Assembly: GCA_965285935.1 (NCBI GenBank)
Contig: OZ260661.1
Location: 121,086,001 to 121,150,000 of the forward strand
DNA length: 64,000 nucleotides
DNA from: Ophelia neglecta
Lineage: Eukaryota
Direction of reading: 5' to 3'
Numbering within the stretch: position 1 is the first letter of the stretch; every line of letters begins with the position of its first letter. Under the pieces are notes generated by a model. That model did not search any database. It saw only the letters and a program-made list of their open reading frames with translations, and was not told the DNA's origin. The position numbers and the translations under genes were made by a program. Shown piece by piece: positions 1-27,534 of this stretch.

Positions 1-1109
1 ATATTAGCTGTATTAAAGTTATATATATTTACACTATAAAATTTGTGAACCTTTTATCTTTGGTAAGAATTGTATTACTTCTGTAGCCAATAAGCACTAA
101 CTTACTGCTCGACGCTTTGGCATGAGTTATCATGGTTTGGGGGTGGGGGTTGGGGCAAGGTATACAAGGCTGTTAAAGCATCTACCGCAGTAAAATGCAT
201 CGCATCACAATACGGTATACTGGTAGCCATAGAAGAGTGAGTTACTGGTTAATCAACCAAGCCAAGCCCGACGCTAGGGGTGACACTTTTGCTGGGACAA
301 AGAATACCTGCTGTTCTCGAAAATTGGCTCCATTTTGTAAATGCATGTTCTTAGTTCATTCTGTTCGGCTTGCCTGTAAATTGCCCCGTTACAATACTGA
401 CCCTACCCTCGGCCCTCCTCACGTAATTCCTATAACATTATGTTTACTTTAAAAAAGCCCTATATACACTATTTCCTTAACGAATTTGAAAAAAAAGACG
501 ATGAAAGTTAGTCTCTAATTGTATGAAATAAAGAATAAAAAGAGGTGACAAAGAAAAAAGAGGTGACAAAGACCACACAATTTAAAAAATTGTCCATCAT
601 TGTCCCCTATCGAGTAAAAATCCGTAATGAAATCTACACGACTCCAACGCCGCTGTGAATGAAGACACGTTTTCAATGTTTGTCCGAAACAATGTATTTT
701 TTTCTATAAGCTTTAAAAAAGCAGTACCTTTATGTTCTCGAAGTAAACGGGCATGGTTTGCTTATCAGTTTTTTCTACATTTTTTAGACAAGAGTCCAAT
801 ATTTTAACTAGCAATATTAAGTCCAATACTTCATCGAAATATTTTTTCGATGCAAAGAAAATATTCCATTGCAGAGTTTTATTTATTTACGTGGACTTGG
901 TATAAGCTGGCATAGTTTACGCTTGAGTGTGGTTGATTGTGTGAATGTGGGGGCAAGGGATACAATTTTTTATCAGTCCAACAAATGACTGGAAGCGCCA
1001 GAGTGCTCCATTGATCACAAGTCGATCGTATTTCTCGGACTTTCAACTACAACTACCTCACATATATTGATCGGCATTCACCGAATCAAGCGGTGGCCTG
1101 TCAAAGTTC

Positions 1110-1149
1110 AGATCCGGTATCGCACCATCCCGTACTCACCATATAAATA
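1110..1149 (+). promoter_or_regulatory. Type-3 (U6-like) Pol III promoter: PSE-position block plus TATA box; equivalent blocks start at 2625, 3201 and 4761
   Basis: AGATCCGGTATYGCACCATCCCGTA begins exactly 63 nt, and TATAAATA exactly 31 nt, before the first G of the conserved body in all four copies. Sequence further upstream diverges between paralogs A and B. Confidence 0.7.
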
Positions 1150-1172
1150 CATTCAATATCTCTGAGAATACC

Positions 1173-1298
1173 GGGGTGAGCCACGGCGTGGTGGGTTGAG
1201 GCCTAATAAGCCATCCCTCCTATGAGCCATAAGCATCGGACTTACCGCCCCGCTGGCAACAGTGGGGTGCCACCCGTTAATTCGATACTCACCCTTTT
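1173..1298 (+). ncRNA. Unassigned 126-nt structured Pol III-type small RNA, copy 1 (paralog A)
   Basis: TATA at 1142 (-31), G start, terminal stem GGGTGAG/CTCACCC closed directly by TTTT, three internal hairpins including CGCCCCGCTG-GCAA-CAGTGGGGTG. Confidence 0.75.
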
Positions 1299-2687
1299 GT
1301 TCGTTTGAGTACTTAAAATTGATATTCAAACTGCTTTATAATTACATTTAAATATTTTTTAATTATTAAAAGATTTTATTTAAAACAGTGAATATATATA
1401 GGCAGCATTCTTGCAAAATAGATGTTTTTGATTTTTCACAAAACAATACAATTGGCAACTAATTTGGGGACAGGGATCTAATGCTTGTTAATTATTTGTT
1501 GATTTAATGTGAAAAGAATTGGGGAAGAAAGGTGTCTCCCTTCATCTTGTTTTCATCTTTATTGATGCTTGATTATTTTCTCCGCTAATAACACATTGCT
1601 TTGCTAATACGCATGTTGGGATTGATTACTTGATATTGTTAAAACGTTGAGAGGTCCAGTGTGTTTTTACTGAATGAGTGGAATCGCTTCGTAATATATG
1701 GTGTGCGATCAAGCCAACCAGAAAGTATGCAAAGTGGGCATTTCTTTTTTGAAAATGAATGTGCGCTGAGGAGTATGAATATATATGCTACATTGAAAAA
1801 AACTACATGCCAGTCTCACAAATTTTGGTTCTTGCACAATCGAAATACAAATGGCAATAAAGGGGTGGAATCATTTAACATCTGATCAGCGATCAAGCCC
1901 ATGAAAATGTATGAACATTTGTAATTTCTCTTTTAAAGATTACGGTTAAGTCGACAGTAAAAATGTCTGCAATACATTCAAAAGTTACACCAAAGTCCCA
2001 TATTTCTTAGTTCGGGTACATTCGAAAAGGCTGTATTAAAGTAATTATTCTGGCGCAATGATCGTGCGGGTTGATGAATTTAGTTCCATGAGTATAGTCC
2101 GTCGGAAAACTCAAGACTGGGACCAAAAGGACTTTGCATTGATTGTAGATTATAATAGGGGGTAAAAAGCCTGTCTTCTTGAGTGTATGAATATGCGCCA
2201 TTTATGGATATAACAGCAGTTTTCGGAACGTTTTGGCGGCTATAGGAGTAGTACTCCCAGTGAGTGATATACCGATTAAACTTGTGTAAAAGAGAGGATT
2301 ACTTAAAAAGCTTGGTTTACTGAAGAGAAATGCAACACAATCTGCAATGAATTTCTGTTATCATGTGGATATTAAATGAAAAAATTTGACATCTCAGCAA
2401 ATGAACTGAATCGCTAGAAATGTACACAATTTATACGAATGTCATAATGGCCACTAATGGGAAATGAATACGTGTCTTCTTGCCAAAACTAAAAGGCTGG
2501 AAGAGTAAGCGCCAGAGAGCACCACTGGTTACAAATCGAGAAGGAGAAGTTCCCTGGCACTTTCAACTACTCCAAATGTATTGATCGGCGTTCACTTAAC
2601 TGAAGGATGGCCGGGTAAAAGGTGAGATCCGGTATTGCACCATCCCGTACTCGGCATATAAATACATTCAATATCTCTGAGAATATC

Positions 2688-2813
2688 GGGGTGAGCCACA
2701 GCGTGGTGGGTTGAGGCCTAATAAGCCATCCCTCCTATGAGCCATAAGCATCGGACTTAACGCCCCGCTGGCAACAGTGGGGTGCCACCCGCTAATTCGA
2801 TACTCACCCTTTT
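2688..2813 (+). ncRNA. Unassigned 126-nt structured Pol III-type small RNA, copy 2 (paralog B)
   Basis: TATA at 2657 (-31). Body differs from copy 1 at 3 positions despite a clearly diverged upstream flank. TTTT end. Confidence 0.75.
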
Positions 2814-3263
2814 GTATTGTGGACATTTTATTTCTATTTTTCCATTTTAGCCCTAACAACGTAATTGTGCATATTTTAGACAAGAGTCCAATATTTTAAC
2901 TAGCAATATTAAGTCCAATACTTCATCGAAATATTTATTTGATGAAAAAAAATACATTCCATAGCAGAGTTTTATTTATTTACGTGAACTTGGTATAAGC
3001 TGGCATAGTTTACGCTTGAGTGTGGTTGACTGTGTGAATGTGGGGGCAAGGGACACAATTTTCAATCAGTCCAACAAATGACTGGAAGGATAAGCGCCAG
3101 AGTGATCACAACTCGACCATATCTCTCGGACTTTCAACTACATGTACCTCACATATATTGATCGACATTCACTGAATCAAGCGATGGTCTGTCAAAGTTC
3201 AGATCCGGTATTGCACCATCCCGTATTCACCATATAAATACATTCAATATCTCTGAGAACATC

Positions 3264-3389
3264 GGGGTGAGCCACGGCGTGGTGGGTTGAGGCCTAATAA
3301 GCCATCCCTCCTATGAGCCATAAGCATCGGACTTACCGCCCCGCTGGCAACAGTGGGGTGCCACCCGCTAATTCGATACTCACCCTTTT
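3264..3389 (+). ncRNA. Unassigned 126-nt structured Pol III-type small RNA, copy 3 (paralog A)
   Basis: TATA at 3233 (-31), same body, TTTT end. Confidence 0.75.
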
Positions 3390-4823
3390 CTTCGTTTGAG
3401 TACTTAAAATTGATATTCAAACTGCTTTATAATTACATTTAAATATTTTTTAATTATTAAAATATTTTATTTAAAACAGTGAATATATATAGGCAGCATT
3501 CTTGCAAAATAGATGTTTTTGATTTTTCACAAAACAATACAATTGGCAACTAATTTGGGGACAGGGATCCAATGCTTGTTAATTATTTGTTGATTTAATG
3601 TGAAAAGAATTGGGGAAGAAAGGTGCCTCCCTTCATCTTGTTTTCATTTTCTTTGATCCTTGATTATTTTCTCTGCTTATAACATATTGCTGTGCTAATA
3701 CGCATGTTGGGATTGATTACTTGATATTGTTAAAACGTTGAGAGGTCCAGTGTGTTTTTACAGAATGAGTGGAATCGCTTCGTAATATTTGGTGTGCGAT
3801 CAAGCCAACCAGAAAGTATGCAAAGTGGGGATTTTTTTTTGAAAATGAATGTGCGCTGAGGAGTATGAATATCGATGGTACATTTAAAAACTACATCCCA
3901 GGCTCACAAATTGTGGTTCGTGCACAATCGAAATACTAATGGCAATAAAGGGGTGGAATCATTTAACATCTGATCAGCGATCAAGCCCATGAAAATGTAT
4001 GAACATTTGTTTTTTCTCTTTTAAAGATTACGGTTAAGTCGACAGTAAAAATGTCTGCAATACATTCAAAAGTTACACCAAAGTCCCATATTTCTTAGTT
4101 CGGGTACATTCGAAAAGGCTGTATTAAAGTAATTATTCTGGCGCAATGATCGTGCGGGTTGATGAATTTAGTTCCATGAGTATAGTCCGTCGGAAAACTC
4201 AAGACTGGGACCAAAAGGACTTTGCATTGATTGTAGATTATAATAGGGGGTAAAAAGCCTGTCTTCTTGAGTGTATGAATATGCGCCATTTATGGATATA
4301 ACAGCAGTTTTCCGAACGTTTTGGCGGCTGTAGGAGTAGTACTCCCAGTGAGTGATATACCGATTAAACTTGTGTAAAAGAGAGGATTACTTAAAAAGCT
4401 TGGTTTACTGACGAAAAATGCACCAAATCTCCACTGAATTTCTCTTATTATGTGGACATTAAATGAAAAATTTGACACCGCAGCAAATTGACTGAATCTC
4501 TAGAAATTTACGCAATTAATATGAATGTCAAAATGGCCACTATTGGGAAATGAATAGGTCTCTTCTTGCCTAAACTAAAAGGCTGGAAATGTACACAATT
4601 TATACGAATGTCATAATGTCCACTAAAAACCTAAAAAGGTGGAAGAGTAAGCGCCAGAGAGCGCCACTGGTTACAAATCGAGAAGTTCCCTGGCACTTTC
4701 AACTACTTCACATGTATTGATCGGCGTTCACTAAACAGAAGGATGGCCGGGTAAAAGGTGAGATCCGGTATTGCACCATCCCGTACTTGGCATATAAATA
4801 CATTCAATATCTCTGAGAATGTC

Positions 4824-4944
4824 GGGGTCAGGCGTGGTGGGTTGAGGCCTAATAAGCCATCCCTCCTATGAGCCATAAGCATCGGACTTAACGCCCCGCT
4901 GGCAACAGTGGGGTGCCACCCGCTAATTCGATACTCACCCTTTT
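4824..4944 (+). ncRNA. Copy 4 (paralog B) of the small RNA, with a 5-nt shortened 5' stem strand; possibly a pseudogene
   Basis: TATA at 4793 (-31). The 5' end reads GGGGTCAGGCGTGG instead of GGGGTGAGCCACAGCGTGG; the remainder is identical to copy 2. Confidence 0.6.
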
Positions 4945-5140
4945 GTATTTTTACGTCTTCCCAATTTAATAGTCGAACAATTTATAATATTTTTCATAAT
5001 TATATCAAAGCAGTGAATACTTGTAGCCTGCTTTCTTGCAATGAATGTTTAAATCATTAATAAAAACAATACAGATGCTTATAAAAATATTTTTTATAAT
5101 ATGCAAGACTCAGGGCCGAAGGTATCTTGCTTCATCCTCC

Positions 5141-5736
5141 TGTTACCGGGTGAGATTTACTATTTGGCTGTAGGAGAGTGTATTTTTCCGCTGCGCAAAA
5201 TGTAGCAGACGATTCAGGTTAATTTATTTAGGCCTAGAAAAAAACCACACCCGGTCACTCGTGATCTGGGAGAAATAACACCCGGTCACTCGTGATCTGG
5301 GAATGATAGAAAACAAATAAGGTAAGGTGCGAAGCGTTGCTAGGCAGGATCTGGAATGATTCTAGGAAAAGTCGAGGAAACAGAAATCTATTGGTCAGAC
5401 GAGTCCATCCTGTGGGCAAACAAACATTACGTAGATAGTTATAGAGCGTTGGTCGGGAGCGGGAGTCGGAGTTGGTCGGTAGAATTTGAAGTGTAAAGAC
5501 GTCCCCGAACTGTAGAGGAATAGTAAAGAGTTGGCCTCCGAGAAGCAAAGTGTAAGGACGTATCATAAATTGGAGCCTGTAGTGTGTACATTTAAAAGAG
5601 TGCAATAAATACGGATTGTTAAGTTATTGTGAAGTTCGTTGTGAAACCGTTACCCGCGCCTCTCAAGCCAAGCGAGTTGAAGCAATTGTGAATAACTAAA
5701 ATCAAGAACAAAAAGGTAAAACAAATAAAGGTTTCA
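5141..5736 (+). repeat. 5' LTR of element 1
   Basis: Identical to 9508 onward for ~560 bp (offset 4367). Contains an internal 30-bp-period repeat CACCCGGTCACTCGTGATCTGGGA and an AATAAA at ~5604. Confidence 0.92.
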
Positions 5737-5862
5737 GTGGAGGAGATTCGGGTTCCTTTTTGGATAACAAAAGGATTGTGAGGAGGAAATTCATTGTGTT
5801 TTGTGTGTTTCAAACTCAAAGGCAAGTACTCTTGTATTTACATTTTCCTACAACTTTTGAAA

Positions 5863-7077
5863 ATGTCGCACTTTTCGATACCATCAAACGTCCAACCCCC
5901 ACAATCAGAGGAAGACGAAACTTTCCAAGACTCTAGGGGGGTGCCCACTCAAACTGAAGGCGAAATACCACAGATATGCGCAGGAGAGGCGTATTCTTTT
6001 GAATTTACTAGCGCACCAGCCCCATTCAGAGGCACTCAAGGGGAAGACATTATAGGGTGGTTAACTAAACTAGACGCATATGGGGATTTGAATAATTTAA
6101 CCCACGTTAAAAAAGGCCAACTCCTGAGCTATCTATTAGAAGATGCTGCCCGCGTCTGGTTTCACGACCAACCCATGGATGATAGAAAAACTTTCGGCCA
6201 AATGTGCGAGATCCTTAGACAAAAATACGATAATCCAAACCTAGAATTTATTCGTGAAAATGCACTAATGGACAGGGTACAAAGAGAGGAAGAAAGCGTT
6301 TCAGACTACGCCAGAGACTTCCATAGGCTCTGCTCATTGCTGGGCAAAGACTATGACGAAAGAAAAACTCTCTTCATAAGGGGACTAAAAAACCCAATTA
6401 AATCGTTTGTACTTGCGCGTCTTCCTGACACCCTCGACGACGCTGAAACTTATGCTCATCTATATGAAACAATTAGTCCTTATTCAAACCAACCAGTTAT
6501 TGCCAAATTAGCTACTAGGGACGACAAAATAGATTCCTTAGTGCAGGAGATAAGCGCCCTACGAACGGAAGTACATCAAAGGCAGCGACAACCCCCACTA
6601 AGAACCACGTCAGGCTCCCCAGTGTGTACACGATGCTCCAGGGTTGGGCACCTCGTTAAGTACTGCCCATTGAACGACTATAATCAACCCCAACGCAATT
6701 TCGGTAACGCACCTTTTTACAGGGCCTCGCAGCGCAATGCCAATCCTTTTGGAAACAGGCCAAATTTCTCCTACCGCTCAGACTATACTCCAGGGCAAAG
6801 CTCGGGCCGCTTCTATGCTCCTCGACCCAGCTTCAGAGGCCCGTCACAACAAGCCATAAATTATAACGGACCACCGAATAGAAGGAACCTGGAACCGGGC
6901 CAATATTTCCAAAATTATCAGCGTGGCCAAGTGAGAAGTGATAGATACACACCCCAGTACCACAGGCAAGAGAATCCACGCTACACCAATAGTGAAATAG
7001 AGCAGATGCTCGAGGCAGCTTTTCAGCGGGGTCAGTCATCCGTAATGTCCAGAAATACAGGAGGAAATTTAAACTAG
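5863..7077 (+). CDS. gag: Gypsy Gag (capsid + CCHC zinc knuckle)
   Basis: First ATG gives MSHFSIP. Retrotransposon capsid-like segments (LEDAARVWF; QREEESVSDYARDF; FIRGLKNPIKSFV), knuckle CTRCSRVGHLVKYC, R/Q/N/Y-rich tail. Confidence 0.9.
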   Translation: MSHFSIPSNVQPPQSEEDETFQDSRGVPTQTEGEIPQICAGEAYSFEFTSAPAPFRGTQGEDIIGWLTKLDAYGDLNNLTHVKKGQLLSYLLEDAARVWFHDQPMDDRKTFGQMCEILRQKYDNPNLEFIRENALMDRVQREEESVSDYARDFHRLCSLLGKDYDERKTLFIRGLKNPIKSFVLARLPDTLDDAETYAHLYETISPYSNQPVIAKLATRDDKIDSLVQEISALRTEVHQRQRQPPLRTTSGSPVCTRCSRVGHLVKYCPLNDYNQPQRNFGNAPFYRASQRNANPFGNRPNFSYRSDYTPGQSSGRFYAPRPSFRGPSQQAINYNGPPNRRNLEPGQYFQNYQRGQVRSDRYTPQYHRQENPRYTNSEIEQMLEAAFQRGQSSVMSRNTGGNLN

Positions 7078-7090
7078 AGACAGCGTCTCA
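7068..7090 (+). promoter_or_regulatory. -1 programmed ribosomal frameshift site
   Basis: T TTA AAC heptamer in X XXY YYZ phase immediately before the gag TAG. The -1 frame is open into the protease ORF. A GAGAC-AGC-GTCTC hairpin follows. Confidence 0.8.
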
Positions 7091-8336
7091 TTTGGGGGGT
7101 CAATTTAATGGTACACATTATTTCAATGAGTCGCAAAATGTAAAGTCACAAGGCCCATGTAATGATTATCGCACAGAAAGAGAAACTTACGGTAAAAGAG
7201 ATAATATAAGCCCAAGGAATAAACAAATCGTGGAAAAAAGTATATTTAATGAAAAGGTTAATTTACAAAATGAAGTTATAAAGAGTGATTATACTGTAGA
7301 AGGTGCAATGGAAGATAAAACAGAGTCAAAGAAGGCCATAGTACAGGAACAGGCAACTCAAACGCAAAATGATAGTCTAGGTACAGATAATGCAATTGAT
7401 AATAATGAAGAAAATGTATTACCGCCAGTGGTTGCGGGGATAGCAAATACTGTGAAATGTAAAGTTTATGGGAAGCCGGTTCAATGTCTTCTTGATTCTG
7501 GTAGCGCATTGTCCCTTTGTCGAAAGAAATATTATGATAAATTGCACCAGTTAAACCCCGATATAAATATGAGAGAACCTAGAATGTATAAAACTGCCAG
7601 GGCAATTAATGGTACAGCTATAGAATTTGCAGGAGAAGTAACCTTAACTATTGCTATGGGAGGTATTGAATTAACTCATGATTTTTCAGTAATGGATGAT
7701 ATGAATTATGATATGGTATTGGGTGTCGACTTCTTGAAGGCACACGGAGCTATTATAAATATGGAAGATTCATGTTTATATTTAAGAGGATCGGAAAAAA
7801 TTAAATTGGGAAATAATGTTAATATTGCGGGCCTAACTAAAGTAACGGCTATGAAGCAGAGCTGCTTGCAACCGGAATCTCAGACTATATTAAAATGTGC
7901 GATAAATAAGCATTTGCCGGAAGGAACGGTATGTATTATAGAAGGAACTAAAGCAGTAAACAAATATAAGATGGCAGTCGGAAAGGTATTAGCAGAGGTT
8001 AGAAATAATACAGTGCCAATGTTGCTCCTTAACCCTACAAGAGAACCGATTGATATTCGAAAGGGAACTACGTTGGGTGTACTTCATATGGTGGAAGCTT
8101 CTAAGTGTATTATCGAGCGTTTAAAAGAGGACGATAATACACCCTTGTTAAACAGAGGCAGACCGCCTGAGATTAGTTTTGGCGGAGCAGATCTAGGTAA
8201 AATAGTAGATAAGTCAGACTGTGATTTTTCAAACACCAATTTAAATGAAAAGCAAAAACTTGAATTTCTTCCTGTGCGGCGTATCGCCCACGTAAACCAC
8301 GTATTCCCGGTCGTGACCCGATTGGAAGCGGCGTAA
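7071..8336 (+). CDS. pol: Truncated Pol: retropepsin aspartic protease + linker, fused to an integrase-like C-terminal tail
   Basis: CLLDSGSALS and MVLGVDFLKAHGAII protease motifs. No YxDD, RNase H or DDE motifs. Ends ...LNEKQKLEF|LPVRRIAHVNH... Confidence 0.85.
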   Translation, partial: KLETASHLGGQFNGTHYFNESQNVKSQGPCNDYRTERETYGKRDNISPRNKQIVEKSIFNEKVNLQNEVIKSDYTVEGAMEDKTESKKAIVQEQATQTQNDSLGTDNAIDNNEENVLPPVVAGIANTVKCKVYGKPVQCLLDSGSALSLCRKKYYDKLHQLNPDINMREPRMYKTARAINGTAIEFAGEVTLTIAMGGIELTHDFSVMDDMNYDMVLGVDFLKAHGAIINMEDSCLYLRGSEKIKLGNNVNIAGLTKVTAMKQSCLQPESQTILKCAINKHLPEGTVCIIEGTKAVNKYKMAVGKVLAEVRNNTVPMLLLNPTREPIDIRKGTTLGVLHMVEASKCIIERLKEDDNTPLLNRGRPPEISFGGADLGKIVDKSDCDFSNTNLNEKQKLEFLPVRRIAHVNHVFPVVTRLEAA

Positions 8337-21866: not shown

Positions 21867-24800
21867 TGTTGTAATAGTACATGAGTATCATTAACTACTT
21901 ACCATTTAGTATGTAAGCCATAAGCGCCATTTTTATACTACTCCTTTTTACCTACTGCGCATGCTCGAGCTTCGTCTACCGCCAATGTTGTATCAAACAA
22001 CGAACACAATAAAGTTCACCGTTTATCGAAATACTTACCATCGTCAAGTATCACTACATGGTGGCAGCGGTGAACAACGAAGCAGTAGATATCCAGGAAG
22101 CAGCGGCACCAACAACTAGGACGCAAAGTAAGAAGAATCTCCAAACTTTGCCATCACCGCCCGTAGTTGTCGTCGCCTACACGAACGACTGCCACTCACA
22201 TGTGCCAACAAGGACATGTACATCCATATACGGTACGATCGTTCATCATACTAGCCAAGACTCTAGCTATATGCAACCTACCAGTCATATACACGGCACG
22301 ATCGCCATTCTGACTACATATCTACCTGGTTGCCATTTTAAAGTTTACCAGCCGGCTAGCTAAACGCTGTAGACTGTACTTTGACCCAGATCTACAACCA
22401 GATCTAATGACCGCACCAGACCGGACGAATCAGCACCGGACAAAGGAAAGACCTCATCAACGAGATTTCAACTACCAGATTGTCTGAGTAAACAGTGCAA
22501 GACACTTATAAGAGTAATTTAATCAGCATTTGGTAAATCAGTAATATATATCACATTTATTACCAGCTATCAGGAAATACAACTGCACTGAGACTTATTT
22601 CATATAATATTGTTGGACCTGCTAATCACTATAGCTACATATAAATATAGAGAGAGAAAGGACAAAAGCATTACATGTGTATCGAAGCTTTATTACTGAT
22701 AATTGATTTTGTACATATACTACCATTCTATGACATATTTTTTCTGTATGTACTACTCACCTGTTTATGCCATACCACATGTATTGTATGTTGTCAACTG
22801 TTGATTAATATTGTATAGTGCATTTATTGTAACACAACTCCACATAACTACACCACAATGTCTCATAAAATGCCAGAAGTTAACTGGGCAGCACCTGATT
22901 TAGCAGAGGAATTCAAAATTTTCAAACAGAGAATAGAATTATTCTATGAGGATCAAGAGGTCACAGATGGAGGCAAAAAAGCATTGAAATTAAAAATAGC
23001 TGTAGGACATGAAGGTCTTAGGAGAATCAACTCATCTGGTCTGTCAGATGATGACAAAAAAGATCACACAAAACTGTTCAAGCTTTTCGAGGATCAATTA
23101 AAAATCAAAGTCAACTTCAGGATTCATAGACTTGAATTTATGAGATATAAACAAAAACCAGGAGAAACCCTTGATGAGTTTGTAACAAGATGCAGACAAA
23201 AAGCAGCTGAATGTGATTTTGAACCTGCAGAATTATCAGAGCGAATACTTGAGCTGATCACAGCATCAACCCCTTTTGAAGCATTCCAAAAAGACTTGCT
23301 CGAAAAAGACAAAGGCTTCACCATTGAAGAAATTCTGAATGAAGGTAGAAAGTATGAAGCTGTCGCAGCAGGAACACAATGCCTGCAATCTCTAGAAGCC
23401 AGACCATCTATTGACTCTATTAATAGAAAGAAATGTGGTAATTGTGGTCTGTCTCACCCACCTAAGCAATGTCCTGCTTACTACGATACTTGCAAGGCAT
23501 GCCACTCTCTTGGACACTGGGCTAAATGCTGTAAGAAAACAAAACGTAAAGGGCAAAGAAACCAGTATTATCCCAATCGTTCCGTTCAGTCTTCTCAAAG
23601 TCATGACCGTCGACAATCGCGTGGAAGAGGACGTAGCCAATCTCGTGGCAGAGGAAGATCTGGGAGCAGGAGTGGTCCAAAAGGCAAACACAAAACTGAG
23701 CAAGTTGGTACCATGCAACAAACAAAGCAAGAAAATACAAGCCCAGAAAGCAAAGAAGAATATGACCAAACTTTCTATGCAATAACTATCTCTGGTTTAT
23801 GTATGAAGTCAGAAAGGAGCGAAGCATACACCTTGGTGAATGTTATTTGTCCCAACCTCTTGGGGCAACACAGATTGAAACTAAAGGTTGACACTGGGGC
23901 TAGTGGAAACACAATACCAGTACGAACCATGGAAATGATGTATGGCAAGGATCAATGGCAAACCCTTGCTGAACATCCGAAAGGAATCAAGCTTACTGCC
24001 TATAATGGGTCAGATATAAAATGCCTGGGAAGCATTAACCTTATGTGCAGATATCGTGCAACAGAGTGGTCGAAGGAAACATTTTACATTGTTGACGTTC
24101 CAGGACCAGCAGTGGTCGGGTTACCTTCATGTGACTCGCTAAAAATGGTGACTATCCACACAGTCAGCCAACCACTACCACAACAATCCGCAAATCAAAC
24201 AAACCTGCACAAACCAGCTATATGTATCAACTCTGTGGAAGATCTGAAAAATATGTACCCTGGACAGTTTGACACTATTGGTAACTTCAAGGGAACAGCC
24301 AAGCTCCACTTGAAGGACGATGCCCAGCCCAGCATCGATTCCCCCAGAAAATACAGTGTACATTTGAAACCAAAAATCAAAGCAGAGCTGGAAAATATGG
24401 AGCAGCAAGGAGTCATTCGGAAAATTGAGCACCATACAGACTGGTGCAGCTCCATGACATCAGCCGTTAAAAAAGACGGATCTCTAAGGATATGTATTGA
24501 TCCGAAGCGCCTTAACCAGGGACTCAAGAGATGCCCACACAAGGTTCCAACGCTTGAAGAACTCAATCCATCATTTGCAAAAGCCAAATACTTTTCCAAG
24601 CTAGATGCTAAGACAGGTTACTGGTCTGTACACCTGGACAAAGACTCACAGGAGCTAACTACTTTCAGAACACCTGTAGGCAGATACTGTTTCACCCGAC
24701 TTCCATTTGGTTTATCAGTCAGTCAAGACATTTTCCAACAACACATGGATAGGATTATTGAGCAATGCCCAGGATCAGTCGGAATTGCTGACGACATCGC

Positions 24801-27534
24801 AGTCACAGGGGAAACAGAGGAACAGCATGATGCTAACCTGATCAGCCTACTCGAAAAAGCCAAACAAGAAGGTCTTGTATTCAACAGCAAGAAATGTCTG
24901 ATCAAAACAGACAAAATCAACTTCTTCGGCTCAATCTACTCTAACACTGGGATCCACCCAGACCCGAGTAAAGTGGAGGACATCCATGATATGCCCACTC
25001 CACAAGATAAAGAAGATCTCCAAAGATTCTTAGGACTCATGAACTATGTGTCACCACACATACCGTACTATTCTGAAAAAACCAGCATCCTATGGGACCT
25101 GCTGAAGAAAGACATTCCTTACATTTGGCAGGAAGATCACCAGAAAACGTTCGAAGACTTGAAGCATTCTATTAATGTTGAATCTTGTCTCCAGTACTAC
25201 AACCCCAATGTAACCACAATCCTGGAAGTGGACAGTTCAATGAAAGGGCTCGGGGCTTGTCTACTTCAGAACGGCAAGCCAGTGGCTTTCGCATCAAAAA
25301 GTCTATCAAAAGCCCAAGCAAGTTACTCGAACATTGAACGTGAAACACTCGCATTAGTATTTGGAATAAACAGATTCCATACCTACCTGTTTGGAAAAGA
25401 GTTTAAGGTTTACACCGATCCCAAACCTCTTGTGATGATACTCGGGAAACCACTGATCAGCGCACCGCCCAGGCTTCAAAGACTTTTAGTCAAAATACAG
25501 GGATATTCCTTTGACATCGAATGGAAACCTGGGAAGACCATGATACTGTCTGACACACTTAGCAGACTACCCAACCCAAAGAAAACCGATGATATACCTC
25601 TAGATTTGCACATAGACGGTGTCAACATAGACCTCATCCACTTTGGGAGCGCCAAGCAGGAAGCTCTTCGTCGCGAAACCCAAGCTGACGCAATACTTCA
25701 ATCAGTATGGAAAATGATCATCGAAGGATGGCCTGAATCTATCAAGGAACTACCTCAGAACTTGAGGCCTTACTGGTCTTACCGGGATGAACTAGGGATT
25801 AGTCATGGTGTGATATTCAAAGGGAGACAGGTATTAATTCCAGAAACAATCAGAGCCGACATTCTGGAACAATTGCATGCGGGACACATGGGTATAGAGA
25901 AGACACGCAAGCTAGCGCGAGAATCAGTGTATTGGCCAAACATCCACAAAGACATTGAAAGCATGACAAAAACGTGTGATACTTGCCAAGAGCATCAGCC
26001 AGCACAGAAGAAACAACCGCTAGAAACCCATGAGATTCCTACAACTCCATGGACCAAACTAGGTACAGATCTGTTCCAAATTAACAAAGACAATTACCTG
26101 CTCATCACAGACTATCTGTCCAAATTCCCTGTGATCCATCATCTGAAAGACACATCAAGTGCTACTGTGGCTAAGAAGACAGCAGAAACATTCAGCCTGC
26201 TGGGATGTCCTGTCGAAATCATATCGGACAATGGGCCACAGTATATTGGAAAACCTTATCAAGATATGTGTCAAATGTATGGAATCAACCATATTACATC
26301 TTCACCCAGATACCCTCAGTCCAACGGTATGGTCGAGCGCATGGTCGGAACAGTCAAACCAATAATACGGAAATGCCTGAAGAAGGGTCAAGACATAAAC
26401 AAAGCACTTATGAATCTCCGAGCAACACCCATCGACACAGATTTGCCATCTCCGGCAGAAATCATGTTCGGAAGACCTATCAGGACCTGTCTACCCAGTG
26501 TGCAAACAACAAGCATGCGTAATAAGAGCAGCGAAGTTTTCAACAAGATAGAGAGGAGGAGAAAGACAATGGAAGAATCTACCAACAACAAACCAGAACT
26601 TTTACCTCTCCGCACTGGACAAAAAGTACGCATACTTGATCACGAAAACAAAACTTGGTGTCCAGCTACAATCACCAAAGTGTGTAAGGAGGCAAGATCG
26701 TATGAGGTCGTAACTCCAAACGGAACCAAACTACGTCGCAACAGATCCCATCTCAGGGAGATGCACACTGCATCACCTCAGAAAGTTGTGAAGAGAGTCC
26801 GATTTGAAGATGACACATCGACTCAAGCAACGCCTGCTAATCCAACGCCACAGCAATCACAGCAACAAAGTGTAAACACTAGCTGTGATCCAGAGAGCCA
26901 GGATCATTATGAACCAGCACACAACAACCACACTATACCTGAAACACTCAAACACCCAACACATATGATCAAACCAAAAACTGGTATGACACGATCAGGT
27001 CGAGTTGTTAAACAACCAAAACACCTAACTGATTATGTTGAGTTTTGATATATTATATGTTCTAAGATAAGCACAATTCATATTGGATTATTATTATTAT
27101 GTTTAAGAAAGCACGGAGTACGTCAATTTCAACATTTACTTTTAGTATATCTATTGAATGATTATAAGGGTAAAATACCAAACAGCTGACCAAAGCATTT
27201 GTCAATCATTATCTCATTGTTAACTGATACATTTTTATTCATAATAGATATTGTGTAACATAATATTTCCTGTAGAGATTGATCATCATAAGCAACGTTT
27301 GTTCATTATATACATTAACATATTTCTCTAGGAAGAGGGGGATGTTGTAATAGTACATGAGTATCATTAACTACTTACCATTTAGTATGTAAGCCATAAG
27401 CGCCATTTTTATACTACTCCTTTTTACCTACTGCGCATGCTCGAGCTTCGTCTACCGCCAATGTTGTATCAAACAACGAACACAATAAAGTTCACCGTTT
27501 ATCGAAATACTTACCATCGTCAAGTATCACTACA
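21867..27534 (+). mobile_element. Intact, recently inserted Ty3/Gypsy LTR retrotransposon (Mag-like clade)
   Basis: Identical 192-bp LTRs TGTTG...CTACA (21867-22058, 27343-27534). 5-bp TSD ACTTT. PBS TGGTGGCAGCGGTG complementary to the tRNA-Leu 3' end. PPT AGGAAGAGGGGGA at 27330-27342. Single ORF. Confidence 0.97.
22858..27048 (+). CDS. Gag-Pol polyprotein (Gag with two zinc knuckles, protease, RT, RNase H, integrase)
   Basis: CGNCGLSHPPKQC and CKACHSLGHWAKC knuckles; VDTGAS; LRICIDPKRLN, KLDAKTGYW, GIADDI; VDSS/IERE/YTD; HAGH..C..C; TDLF, SDNGPQY, NGMVER; C-terminal TRSGRVVKQP. The PR-RT-RH-IN order is Gypsy-type. Confidence 0.97.
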   Translation: MSHKMPEVNWAAPDLAEEFKIFKQRIELFYEDQEVTDGGKKALKLKIAVGHEGLRRINSSGLSDDDKKDHTKLFKLFEDQLKIKVNFRIHRLEFMRYKQKPGETLDEFVTRCRQKAAECDFEPAELSERILELITASTPFEAFQKDLLEKDKGFTIEEILNEGRKYEAVAAGTQCLQSLEARPSIDSINRKKCGNCGLSHPPKQCPAYYDTCKACHSLGHWAKCCKKTKRKGQRNQYYPNRSVQSSQSHDRRQSRGRGRSQSRGRGRSGSRSGPKGKHKTEQVGTMQQTKQENTSPESKEEYDQTFYAITISGLCMKSERSEAYTLVNVICPNLLGQHRLKLKVDTGASGNTIPVRTMEMMYGKDQWQTLAEHPKGIKLTAYNGSDIKCLGSINLMCRYRATEWSKETFYIVDVPGPAVVGLPSCDSLKMVTIHTVSQPLPQQSANQTNLHKPAICINSVEDLKNMYPGQFDTIGNFKGTAKLHLKDDAQPSIDSPRKYSVHLKPKIKAELENMEQQGVIRKIEHHTDWCSSMTSAVKKDGSLRICIDPKRLNQGLKRCPHKVPTLEELNPSFAKAKYFSKLDAKTGYWSVHLDKDSQELTTFRTPVGRYCFTRLPFGLSVSQDIFQQHMDRIIEQCPGSVGIADDIAVTGETEEQHDANLISLLEKAKQEGLVFNSKKCLIKTDKINFFGSIYSNTGIHPDPSKVEDIHDMPTPQDKEDLQRFLGLMNYVSPHIPYYSEKTSILWDLLKKDIPYIWQEDHQKTFEDLKHSINVESCLQYYNPNVTTILEVDSSMKGLGACLLQNGKPVAFASKSLSKAQASYSNIERETLALVFGINRFHTYLFGKEFKVYTDPKPLVMILGKPLISAPPRLQRLLVKIQGYSFDIEWKPGKTMILSDTLSRLPNPKKTDDIPLDLHIDGVNIDLIHFGSAKQEALRRETQADAILQSVWKMIIEGWPESIKELPQNLRPYWSYRDELGISHGVIFKGRQVLIPETIRADILEQLHAGHMGIEKTRKLARESVYWPNIHKDIESMTKTCDTCQEHQPAQKKQPLETHEIPTTPWTKLGTDLFQINKDNYLLITDYLSKFPVIHHLKDTSSATVAKKTAETFSLLGCPVEIISDNGPQYIGKPYQDMCQMYGINHITSSPRYPQSNGMVERMVGTVKPIIRKCLKKGQDINKALMNLRATPIDTDLPSPAEIMFGRPIRTCLPSVQTTSMRNKSSEVFNKIERRRKTMEESTNNKPELLPLRTGQKVRILDHENKTWCPATITKVCKEARSYEVVTPNGTKLRRNRSHLREMHTASPQKVVKRVRFEDDTSTQATPANPTPQQSQQQSVNTSCDPESQDHYEPAHNNHTIPETLKHPTHMIKPKTGMTRSGRVVKQPKHLTDYVEF

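Follow-up and report, generated by a model that had tools for sequence, protein, structure and literature searches.

Genes for a predicted new structured small RNA, probably tRNA-derived and with a hybrid promoter, in Ophelia neglecta

The rodent 4.5SI and 4.5SH RNAs are lineage-restricted transcripts of RNA polymerase III (Pol III), ~100 nt long and derived from tRNA or short interspersed element (SINE) sequence, whose genes combine internal boxes A and B with a TATA or TATA-like box at -31/-24 and occur in few or tandem copies, and whose function was long unknown (PMC10137851). Here, we describe an array of four genes (A to D) for a small structured RNA that is not catalogued in Rfam. The array was found in a 64,000-nt stretch of the genome of Ophelia neglecta (assembly GCA_965285935.1, contig OZ260661.1, here contig 1, positions 121,086,001 to 121,150,000 of the forward strand), which was analysed at its full length and is referred to as the window. 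The closest known design appears to be that of the 4.5SI and 4.5SH genes, with vault RNA genes similar in layout.

With the rodent genes the new family would share its restriction to a lineage, its derivation from tRNA, the combination of boxes A and B with a TATA box and the few or tandem copies. However, there is no sequence relationship, and the new RNA is tRNA-like only in its 3' 20 nt, has boxes A and B separated by ~85 nt, possesses an extra upstream box with the core of the proximal sequence element (PSE) and is predicted to fold around a four-way junction. Vault RNA genes also occur as several paralogs with upstream as well as internal elements. In both families, the two ends of the RNA pair in a terminal stem, a box A or box A-like element and a box B lie near the 5' and 3' ends, respectively, and the centre is variable, and the upstream motif recurs at one of this genome's vault-like genes. 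In contrast, the vault model RF00006 does not match the new RNA, the terminal stem directly adjoins box B and the central domain is partly conserved (hairpin Pb). Y RNAs and sbRNAs, which are small Pol III RNAs, share with the new RNA a conserved terminal stem broken by a conserved loop, and in this genome a TATA box at ~-30 and an upstream CACCAT are common to both, but the new RNA is without the Ro-binding stem sequence (GGUCCG...UUGAC) and is not matched by RF00019. Elongator tRNA-Met shares 18 of 20 nt at the 3' end and the sequence CAUAA, which is found in the Pb loop, whereas the new RNA, at ~126 nt, has three extra hairpins and carries the T loop in an internal loop.

The array and the other members of the family

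The four near-identical blocks reported in a first-pass annotation, which was made from the letters of the window alone, are present on the forward strand at 1173-1298 (gene A), 2688-2813 (gene B), 3264-3389 (gene C) and 4824-4944 (gene D). Genes A, B and C each specify a predicted RNA of 126 nt, including in gene A the T4 terminator at 1295-1298, and gene C differs from gene A by 1 substitution. Covariance model scores are 153 bits for gene A, 157 bits for gene B and 134 bits for gene D, which is 121 nt long and in which three pairs of the terminal stem (P1) were flagged as broken. In gene D, 5 nt have been lost and a G has become C within the 5' strand of the region forming stems P1 and P2, which probably leaves this copy impaired. 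Other details given by the first-pass annotation also held. The TATA-type element TATAAATA begins exactly at -31 from the start of the G run in all four blocks (1142-1149, 2657-2664, 3233-3240 and 4793-4800 for genes A to D, respectively), and in each of them the terminal stem, GGGGUGAG/CUCACCC(U), directly abuts TTTT. High identity between genes A and B does begin at -63, being ~94% over -63 to -1 and 97.6% in the body, while farther upstream it is ~65% and past the T4 run it is at chance level. The bodies of genes A to D have a GC content of 57-59% compared to ~37% in their surroundings.

The array is an older A+B pair that was duplicated as a 2.09-kb tandem unit to give C+D. The duplication spans 773-4950, with unit 1 at ~773-2864 (A and B) and unit 2 at ~2865-4950 (C and D), the unit spacing is 2086-2093 bp, and the similarity stops just past genes B and D. 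Spacers in the two units are ~94.5% identical (81 substitutions in 1469 aligned sites). The three public sequencing runs that contain the locus are whole-genome DNA from one sample, and their depth is flat over genes and spacers. Contigs from these runs have loose ends at 2813/4944, where they extend past the terminator into flanking sequence absent from the assembly, which suggests an unassembled further copy or an alternative haplotype of the array.

When the 762-Mb genome was searched using BLAST, a fifth, diverged paralog (gene P5) was found ~20 Mb from the array, and a first covariance model built from these five genes (A to D and P5) recovered a tandem pair, genes P6 and P7, which lie 747 bp apart on contig 5 and score 62-63 bits. 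A second model, built from all seven genes, found nothing further in the genome, and searches with the two most conserved words returned the same seven genes and one match resembling a 5' fragment. Hence, the family consists of seven genes in three loci, and these fall into three lineages (A to D, P5 and P6/P7) that are only ~60-80% identical to one another. As the motif and covariance model searches return only the family loci and the single fragment-like match, the blocks are not a chance pattern. The additional match (L070, 1500-1570; C1:69426910) consists of an exact copy of the 19-nt family 5' word followed by weakly similar sequence, with neither the partner strand of the terminal stem nor the upstream box, and may be what remains of the 5' part of a decayed eighth copy.

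The possibility of a SINE, which the first-pass annotation had named among the findings that would overturn a gene interpretation, was also considered. Neither A-rich tails nor target-site duplications were found at the seven genes, and the upstream promoter region was duplicated together with the body. The number of copies, seven rather than thousands of dispersed ones, the co-duplicated upstream regions and the lack of A-tails and target-site duplications exclude a SINE.

Predicted fold and evidence of constraint

The predicted RNA is closed by P1, an 8-bp terminal stem. Past this stem lies an asymmetric internal loop of invariant sequence, with CCRC opposite AAYUCGAUA, a T-loop-like segment, and then a 9-bp stem with a bulged U (P2) which leads to a four-way junction. 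The junction arms are Pa, a hairpin varying in both length and sequence, Pb, a conserved hairpin that has a 9-nt loop, AGNCNNAAG, and a 1x1 mismatch between its two stem halves, and Pc, a 10-bp hairpin capped by a GCAA tetraloop in genes A to D and P5 and by a larger loop in genes P6 and P7.

When the genes were aligned with MAFFT without regard to structure and then folded with RNAalifold, P1, P2, Pb and Pc all emerged, and both partners had changed in 4 of their pairs. Double changes include G-C to A-U in P1, G-C to U-G in P2, and A-U, U-A and G-C at one pair in Pb. In a model-fitted alignment, 98.4% of cells pair and double changes are seen in 11 of the 36 pairs, values that were reached in 0 of 500 shuffles, while sliding the partner strand by 1-3 columns leaves only 0-3 double-change pairs. 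However, the model-fitted alignment leans towards the structure and the MAFFT and RNAalifold run is thus the fairer test. The minimum free energy gave z-scores of -2.5 (copy A) and -4.0 (gene P5). Compensatory substitutions that maintain helices, as expected of a structured functional RNA, are therefore found across the three paralog lineages of this one genome, and the three old lineages argue for selection on structure.

Additional evidence comes from the recent 2.09-kb duplicates. The spacer rate, 5.5% of sites, predicts ~6.8 substitutions per RNA body, against 1 observed in each (P ~0.008 and ~0.010), so that the bodies have changed ~7-fold less than the spacers. The G13>A change in gene B keeps a P2 pair (G-U to A-U), and none of the single substitutions among genes A to D, G13A (in B) and U105C (in B, C and D), disrupts a pair in the P2 register chosen by RNAalifold. 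With seven genes and a fold kept across three lineages, the first-pass proposal of a multi-copy, selectively maintained family of structured small RNAs is supported. The genes form a real and clearly bounded family, and the new structured small RNA that they would encode is a well-supported prediction.

Promoter elements and a tRNA-Met-like 3' end

In order to compare promoters, the 100 nt upstream of the genome's own small-RNA genes were extracted. A TATA box and the hexamer CACCAY, the core of the local PSE, lie at -31 and -63, respectively, in U6 and U6atac and at -34 and -66 in 7SK. For the Y genes, the TATA box is at -29 (two genes) and the hexamer at -63 (three of four genes), and one U2 gene has the hexamer at -59 and no TATA box. 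In genes A to D, the TATA box (TATAAAT) is at -31, precisely as in U6 and U6atac and close to the -30/-25 position typical of type-3 genes, but gene P5 has only a weak TATA-like stretch and genes P6 and P7 have none. The hexamer is at -50 in genes A to D, at -49 in gene P5 and at -59, as CACCAC, in genes P6 and P7. The PSE of a type-3 gene is expected at ~-65 to -48. In genes A to D, the hexamer is 13 bp nearer to the start than in all of the genome's recognised type-3 genes, and the 5' half of the local PSE, CACA ahead of CACCAY, is unmatched in the family. The Pol III type-3 label of the first-pass annotation is therefore only partly supported: the position of the TATA box agrees with that of U6 and U6atac, and the comparison that it had proposed with upstream regions of this species' own small-RNA genes does reveal the PSE core, but at -50 and not at -63 or -66, which departs from the U6-type geometry.

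The hexamer forms part of a longer box, ATTGCACCAYYCC, which is also found in genes P6 and P7 and is the only upstream sequence kept in all three lineages. In gene A, the conserved upstream block is at 1100-1133, and its core, GGTATCGCACCATCCCGT at 1116-1133, includes the CACCAT at -50. The corresponding cores are at 2631-2648 in gene B (GGTATTGCACCATCCCGT), 3207-3224 in gene C and 4767-4784 in gene D. The gene A block is 77-80% identical to that of gene P5 over 35 nt within flanks that are otherwise unalignable. Six sites in the genome match an 18-nt form of the box exactly. Five of them belong to genes A to D and P5, and the sixth lies, in the same orientation, 62 nt ahead of a vault-like gene on contig 8. 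This vault-like gene (L040/L019, C8:74831639-74831771, minus strand) is 133 nt long, scores 46.5 bits with RF00006 and includes an embedded tRNA-like segment, and its upstream box, GGTATTGCACCACTCCAT, is at -69 to -52 with the CACCAC core at -62. Hence, the box is a genuine upstream element shared by Pol III genes in this genome, and it appears to be related to the local PSE core. No Staf/ZNF143 or octamer sites were seen when the upstream block was inspected by eye. At the other end, a run of T4-5 lies directly past P1 in all seven genes though their downstream flanks are unrelated, and TTTT is not found within any of the seven bodies, as expected for genes terminated by Pol III.

A search with a word from the conserved 3' segment matched, with one mismatch, a tandem array on contig 8, which is made up of tRNA-Met(CAU)-type genes that have a 22-nt insertion after the anticodon arm and score 44 bits with the Rfam tRNA model. 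At least seven such genes, tandem or dispersed, are found from C8:26910000-26911500 on to C8:26948528, and they were missed by ARAGORN. The last 20 nt before the T run in gene A (1275-1294) are identical to the tRNA-Met T arm at 18 positions (z 7.4; 0 of 1000 shuffles), the match covering the T-stem 5' strand, the T loop, the T-stem 3' strand and the first two acceptor nucleotides. Other copies score lower against this T arm in the same register. Consequently, AATTCGATACT is identical at 10 of 11 positions to the bona fide box B of a tRNA-Met gene of this genome, and it agrees with the box B consensus GGTTCRAnYCY at 7 of 10. The tRNA-Met T arm on contig 8 is the apparent source of the 3' end of the new RNA. 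The former T-stem 3' strand (CUCAC) now pairs with the RNA's own 5' end (GUGAG), which leaves the T-loop sequence in the internal loop, and we take the inner 5 bp of P1 (GUGAG/CUCAC) to equal the T stem of animal elongator tRNA-Met.

A box A-like element, CGGCGTGGTGG (CAGCTTGGTGG in genes P6 and P7), begins at +12 (1184-1194 in gene A) and agrees with 7 of the 9 specified positions of TRGYnnARBGG, and variation between the paralogs is confined to the degenerate positions. Its distance from the start is that of a canonical box A (PMC10137851), which in type-2 genes lies ~11 bp from the start. Taken together, the box A-like element and a box B nearly identical to that of tRNA-Met point to a hybrid of a type-2 and an upstream promoter and to a tRNA-derived origin. 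Both internal boxes are present and invariant, and their role in the promoter is putative.

The RNA 3' end, AUACUCACCCU (1284-1294 and equivalents), also agrees at 8 of 11 positions with the 5' end of U1 snRNA, AUACUUACCUG, and the RNA 5' end resembles a GGUGAG 5' splice site, such that P1 looks like a duplex between U1 and a 5' splice site. As many motif comparisons were made, this likeness is treated as coincidence.

Interpretation and alternatives

No match to the family was obtained when the whole window was searched against Rfam 15 at gathering thresholds, and nothing meaningful was found for gene A and the paralog loci at E up to 10. This agrees with the first-pass annotation, in which the body could not be matched to the Pol III families considered there. 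The canonical genes for U6, U6atac, 7SK, RNase P, RNase MRP, Y, vault and signal recognition particle (SRP) RNAs all lie elsewhere in the genome and the family is therefore none of these. Genes for U1 and U2 are present as well. Large tandem arrays were found for U6 (C9:7.93-7.99 Mb, 1.59-kb period, >30 copies), U2 (C7:10.50-10.56 Mb, 783-bp period), U1 (C5:105.6-106.5 Mb, ~1356-bp period) and SRP RNA (C5:75.74-75.92 Mb, ~1.32-kb period). Local alignment of genes A, P5 and P6 with the U6, U6atac, 7SK, Y, vault, RNase P, RNase MRP, SRP, U1 and U2 RNAs yielded one 11-mer only, GGUUAGCACUC, shared by gene P6 (L068, 2360-2372) and the AGC-triad/internal stem-loop (ISL) region of U6atac (L028); it is absent from genes A to D and P5 and is probably due to chance.

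Specific identities were also rejected. ARAGORN reported no tRNA and the Rfam tRNA model gave no match at E up to 10. A Y RNA or sbRNA was dismissed as no family model matches, canonical Y genes are elsewhere and there is no local similarity, and a vault RNA as RF00006 does not match while eight vault matches are found elsewhere in the genome. The suggestion in the first-pass annotation of a highly diverged Y, sbRNA or vault-type RNA is hence not sustained. Telomerase RNA is contradicted by the insufficient length of the RNA, the absence of a 1.5-repeat template and a candidate loop that is not kept from one paralog to the next. A spliced leader RNA, an Sm-class snRNA and a C/D or H/ACA snoRNA were rejected as there is no Sm site and there are no boxes, and a primer for the neighbouring Ty3/gypsy element as the window holds no complementary primer-binding site. 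Scans of metagenomes with two conserved patterns gave nothing for the first and one match for the second (L062), a chance match inside a bacterial coding region, and a full-text literature search for the conserved words found unrelated primers only.

The array lies among mobile elements. A Ty3/gypsy-type long terminal repeat (LTR) retrotransposon at 5108-8336, which includes a gag open reading frame (ORF; 5794-7074) and an aspartyl protease ORF (7092-8333), begins ~160 bp downstream of gene D. The k-mer depth over 5108-5400 is 20- to 50-fold higher in the DNA runs, indicating a high-copy repeat, probably the LTR. Farther along, at 22858-27048, is an intact-looking Ty3/gypsy polyprotein ORF of 1396 aa with reverse transcriptase, RNase H and integrase domains.

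From sequence comparison, the family is very probably transcribed by Pol III, and its promoter is better described as a hybrid than as type 3. The explanation that we favour, and consider rather probable, is an uncatalogued, probably lineage-specific, tRNA-derived family of structured Pol III RNAs with a hybrid promoter, represented by seven genes in three loci. Several points weigh against it. The matches to the box A and box B consensus sequences are partial (7/9 and 7/10), and the ~85 nt between the boxes far exceeds the usual distance of 30-40. The 5' part and the Pb loop (CAUAA) have no significant similarity to tRNA-Met, and only the 3' 20 nt are therefore demonstrably tRNA-like. Genes P6 and P7 have no TATA box, and the PSE-like hexamer of genes A to D and P5 is not at the -63 of bona fide type-3 genes. 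All of the covariation comes from three paralog lineages within one genome, gene conversion could partly mimic the conservation of the bodies, and the public runs, being DNA with flat depth, are uninformative on expression.

Alternatively, these could be pure type-3 genes with a U6-like external promoter served by SNAPc and Brf2, in which the internal boxes are kept only for structure or protein binding. This is less likely. In its favour are the TATA box exactly at the U6 and U6atac position, the upstream block holding the core common to U6, U6atac, 7SK and Y upstream regions, and the onset of high A/B identity at -63. However, a PSE 13 bp nearer to the start than in recognised type-3 genes would abut the TATA box, its 5' half is absent, genes P6 and P7 lack the TATA box altogether, and the B box is near-identical to that of a tRNA gene. 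In genes P6 and P7 at least, the lack of a TATA box and a hexamer at -59, its position in the U2 gene, would fit a Pol II, snRNA-type promoter and a family that switches polymerase, but a T4 run directly past the stem, the retained internal boxes and the absence of an Sm site and of a recognisable downstream 3' box make this improbable.

It is equally improbable that the genes have no function and are what is left of a decaying tRNA-derived repeat or segmental duplication, resembling one another due to recent duplication and gene conversion. The tRNA-derived 3' end, the damage to copy D, the fragment-like match on contig 1, the mobile elements around the array and locus-bearing public runs that are DNA only are all compatible with decay. 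On the other hand, P1, P2, Pb and Pc have been kept via compensatory changes in three lineages ~60-80% identical, the upstream motif and the position of the terminator are retained amid otherwise unrelated flanks, and the seven copies bear no A-tails or target-site duplications. Even less credible is that the RNA belongs to a known family (Y/sbRNA, vault, 7SK, a minor snRNA or telomerase RNA) from which it has diverged extremely. The overall design does resemble that of Y and vault RNAs in its terminal stem with a conserved internal loop, its variable centre and oligo-U end and its several gene copies, yet no Rfam family scores even at E 10, the canonical Y, vault, 7SK, U6atac, RNase P, RNase MRP and SRP genes are accounted for elsewhere, there is no local similarity beyond the one probably fortuitous 11-mer, and neither an Sm site nor a 1.5-repeat telomere template is present.

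If the hybrid promoter is correct, it would comprise the TATA box at -31, the upstream box with the PSE core hexamer, the box A-like element at +12 and box B, the latter, together with the 3' half of the terminal stem, having descended from the T arm of a tRNA-Met gene of elongator type. TFIIIC would bind the internal boxes and TFIIIB/TBP the TATA box, while the upstream box may recruit an activator or a SNAPc-like factor. Pol III would then start at the G run and stop at the T4-5 run directly past the terminal stem, and the predicted product is an RNA of 126-143 nt that begins with a 5' triphosphate and ends in a 3' oligo-U tail to which La would bind. Y, vault and 4.5S-type RNAs act as protein-binding scaffolds, and the new RNA may do the same, with the invariant internal loop and the Pb loop as candidate recognition sites, though a scaffold function is pure inference and also counts against the overall explanation. 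A more ambitious version, in which the RNA scaffolds an abundant lophotrochozoan ribonucleoprotein (RNP), is a mimic of the tRNA elbow whose T-loop-like internal loop is read by a dedicated partner, and is conserved beyond this species, is doubtful.

The kind of RNA described here, lineage-specific and derived in part from tRNA, is already known from other Pol III systems, and the RNA family within it is new. To our knowledge, Pol III transcriptomes are almost unexplored beyond vertebrates, flies, worms and yeast, and each genuinely new Pol III RNA that we know of (Y, vault, 7SK, 4.5SH and snaR) eventually exposed a cellular pathway of its own. Should the RNP scaffold prove to exist, the RNA would represent a new class alongside the Y and vault RNAs. 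The locus is a compact case of a new structured RNA supported by covariation within a single genome, and the upstream element shared with the vault-like gene may define a subclass of Pol III promoter in this lineage. It also makes visible an apparent evolutionary route, in which the T arm of a tRNA-Met gene was recruited both as box B and as one half of a new terminal stem.

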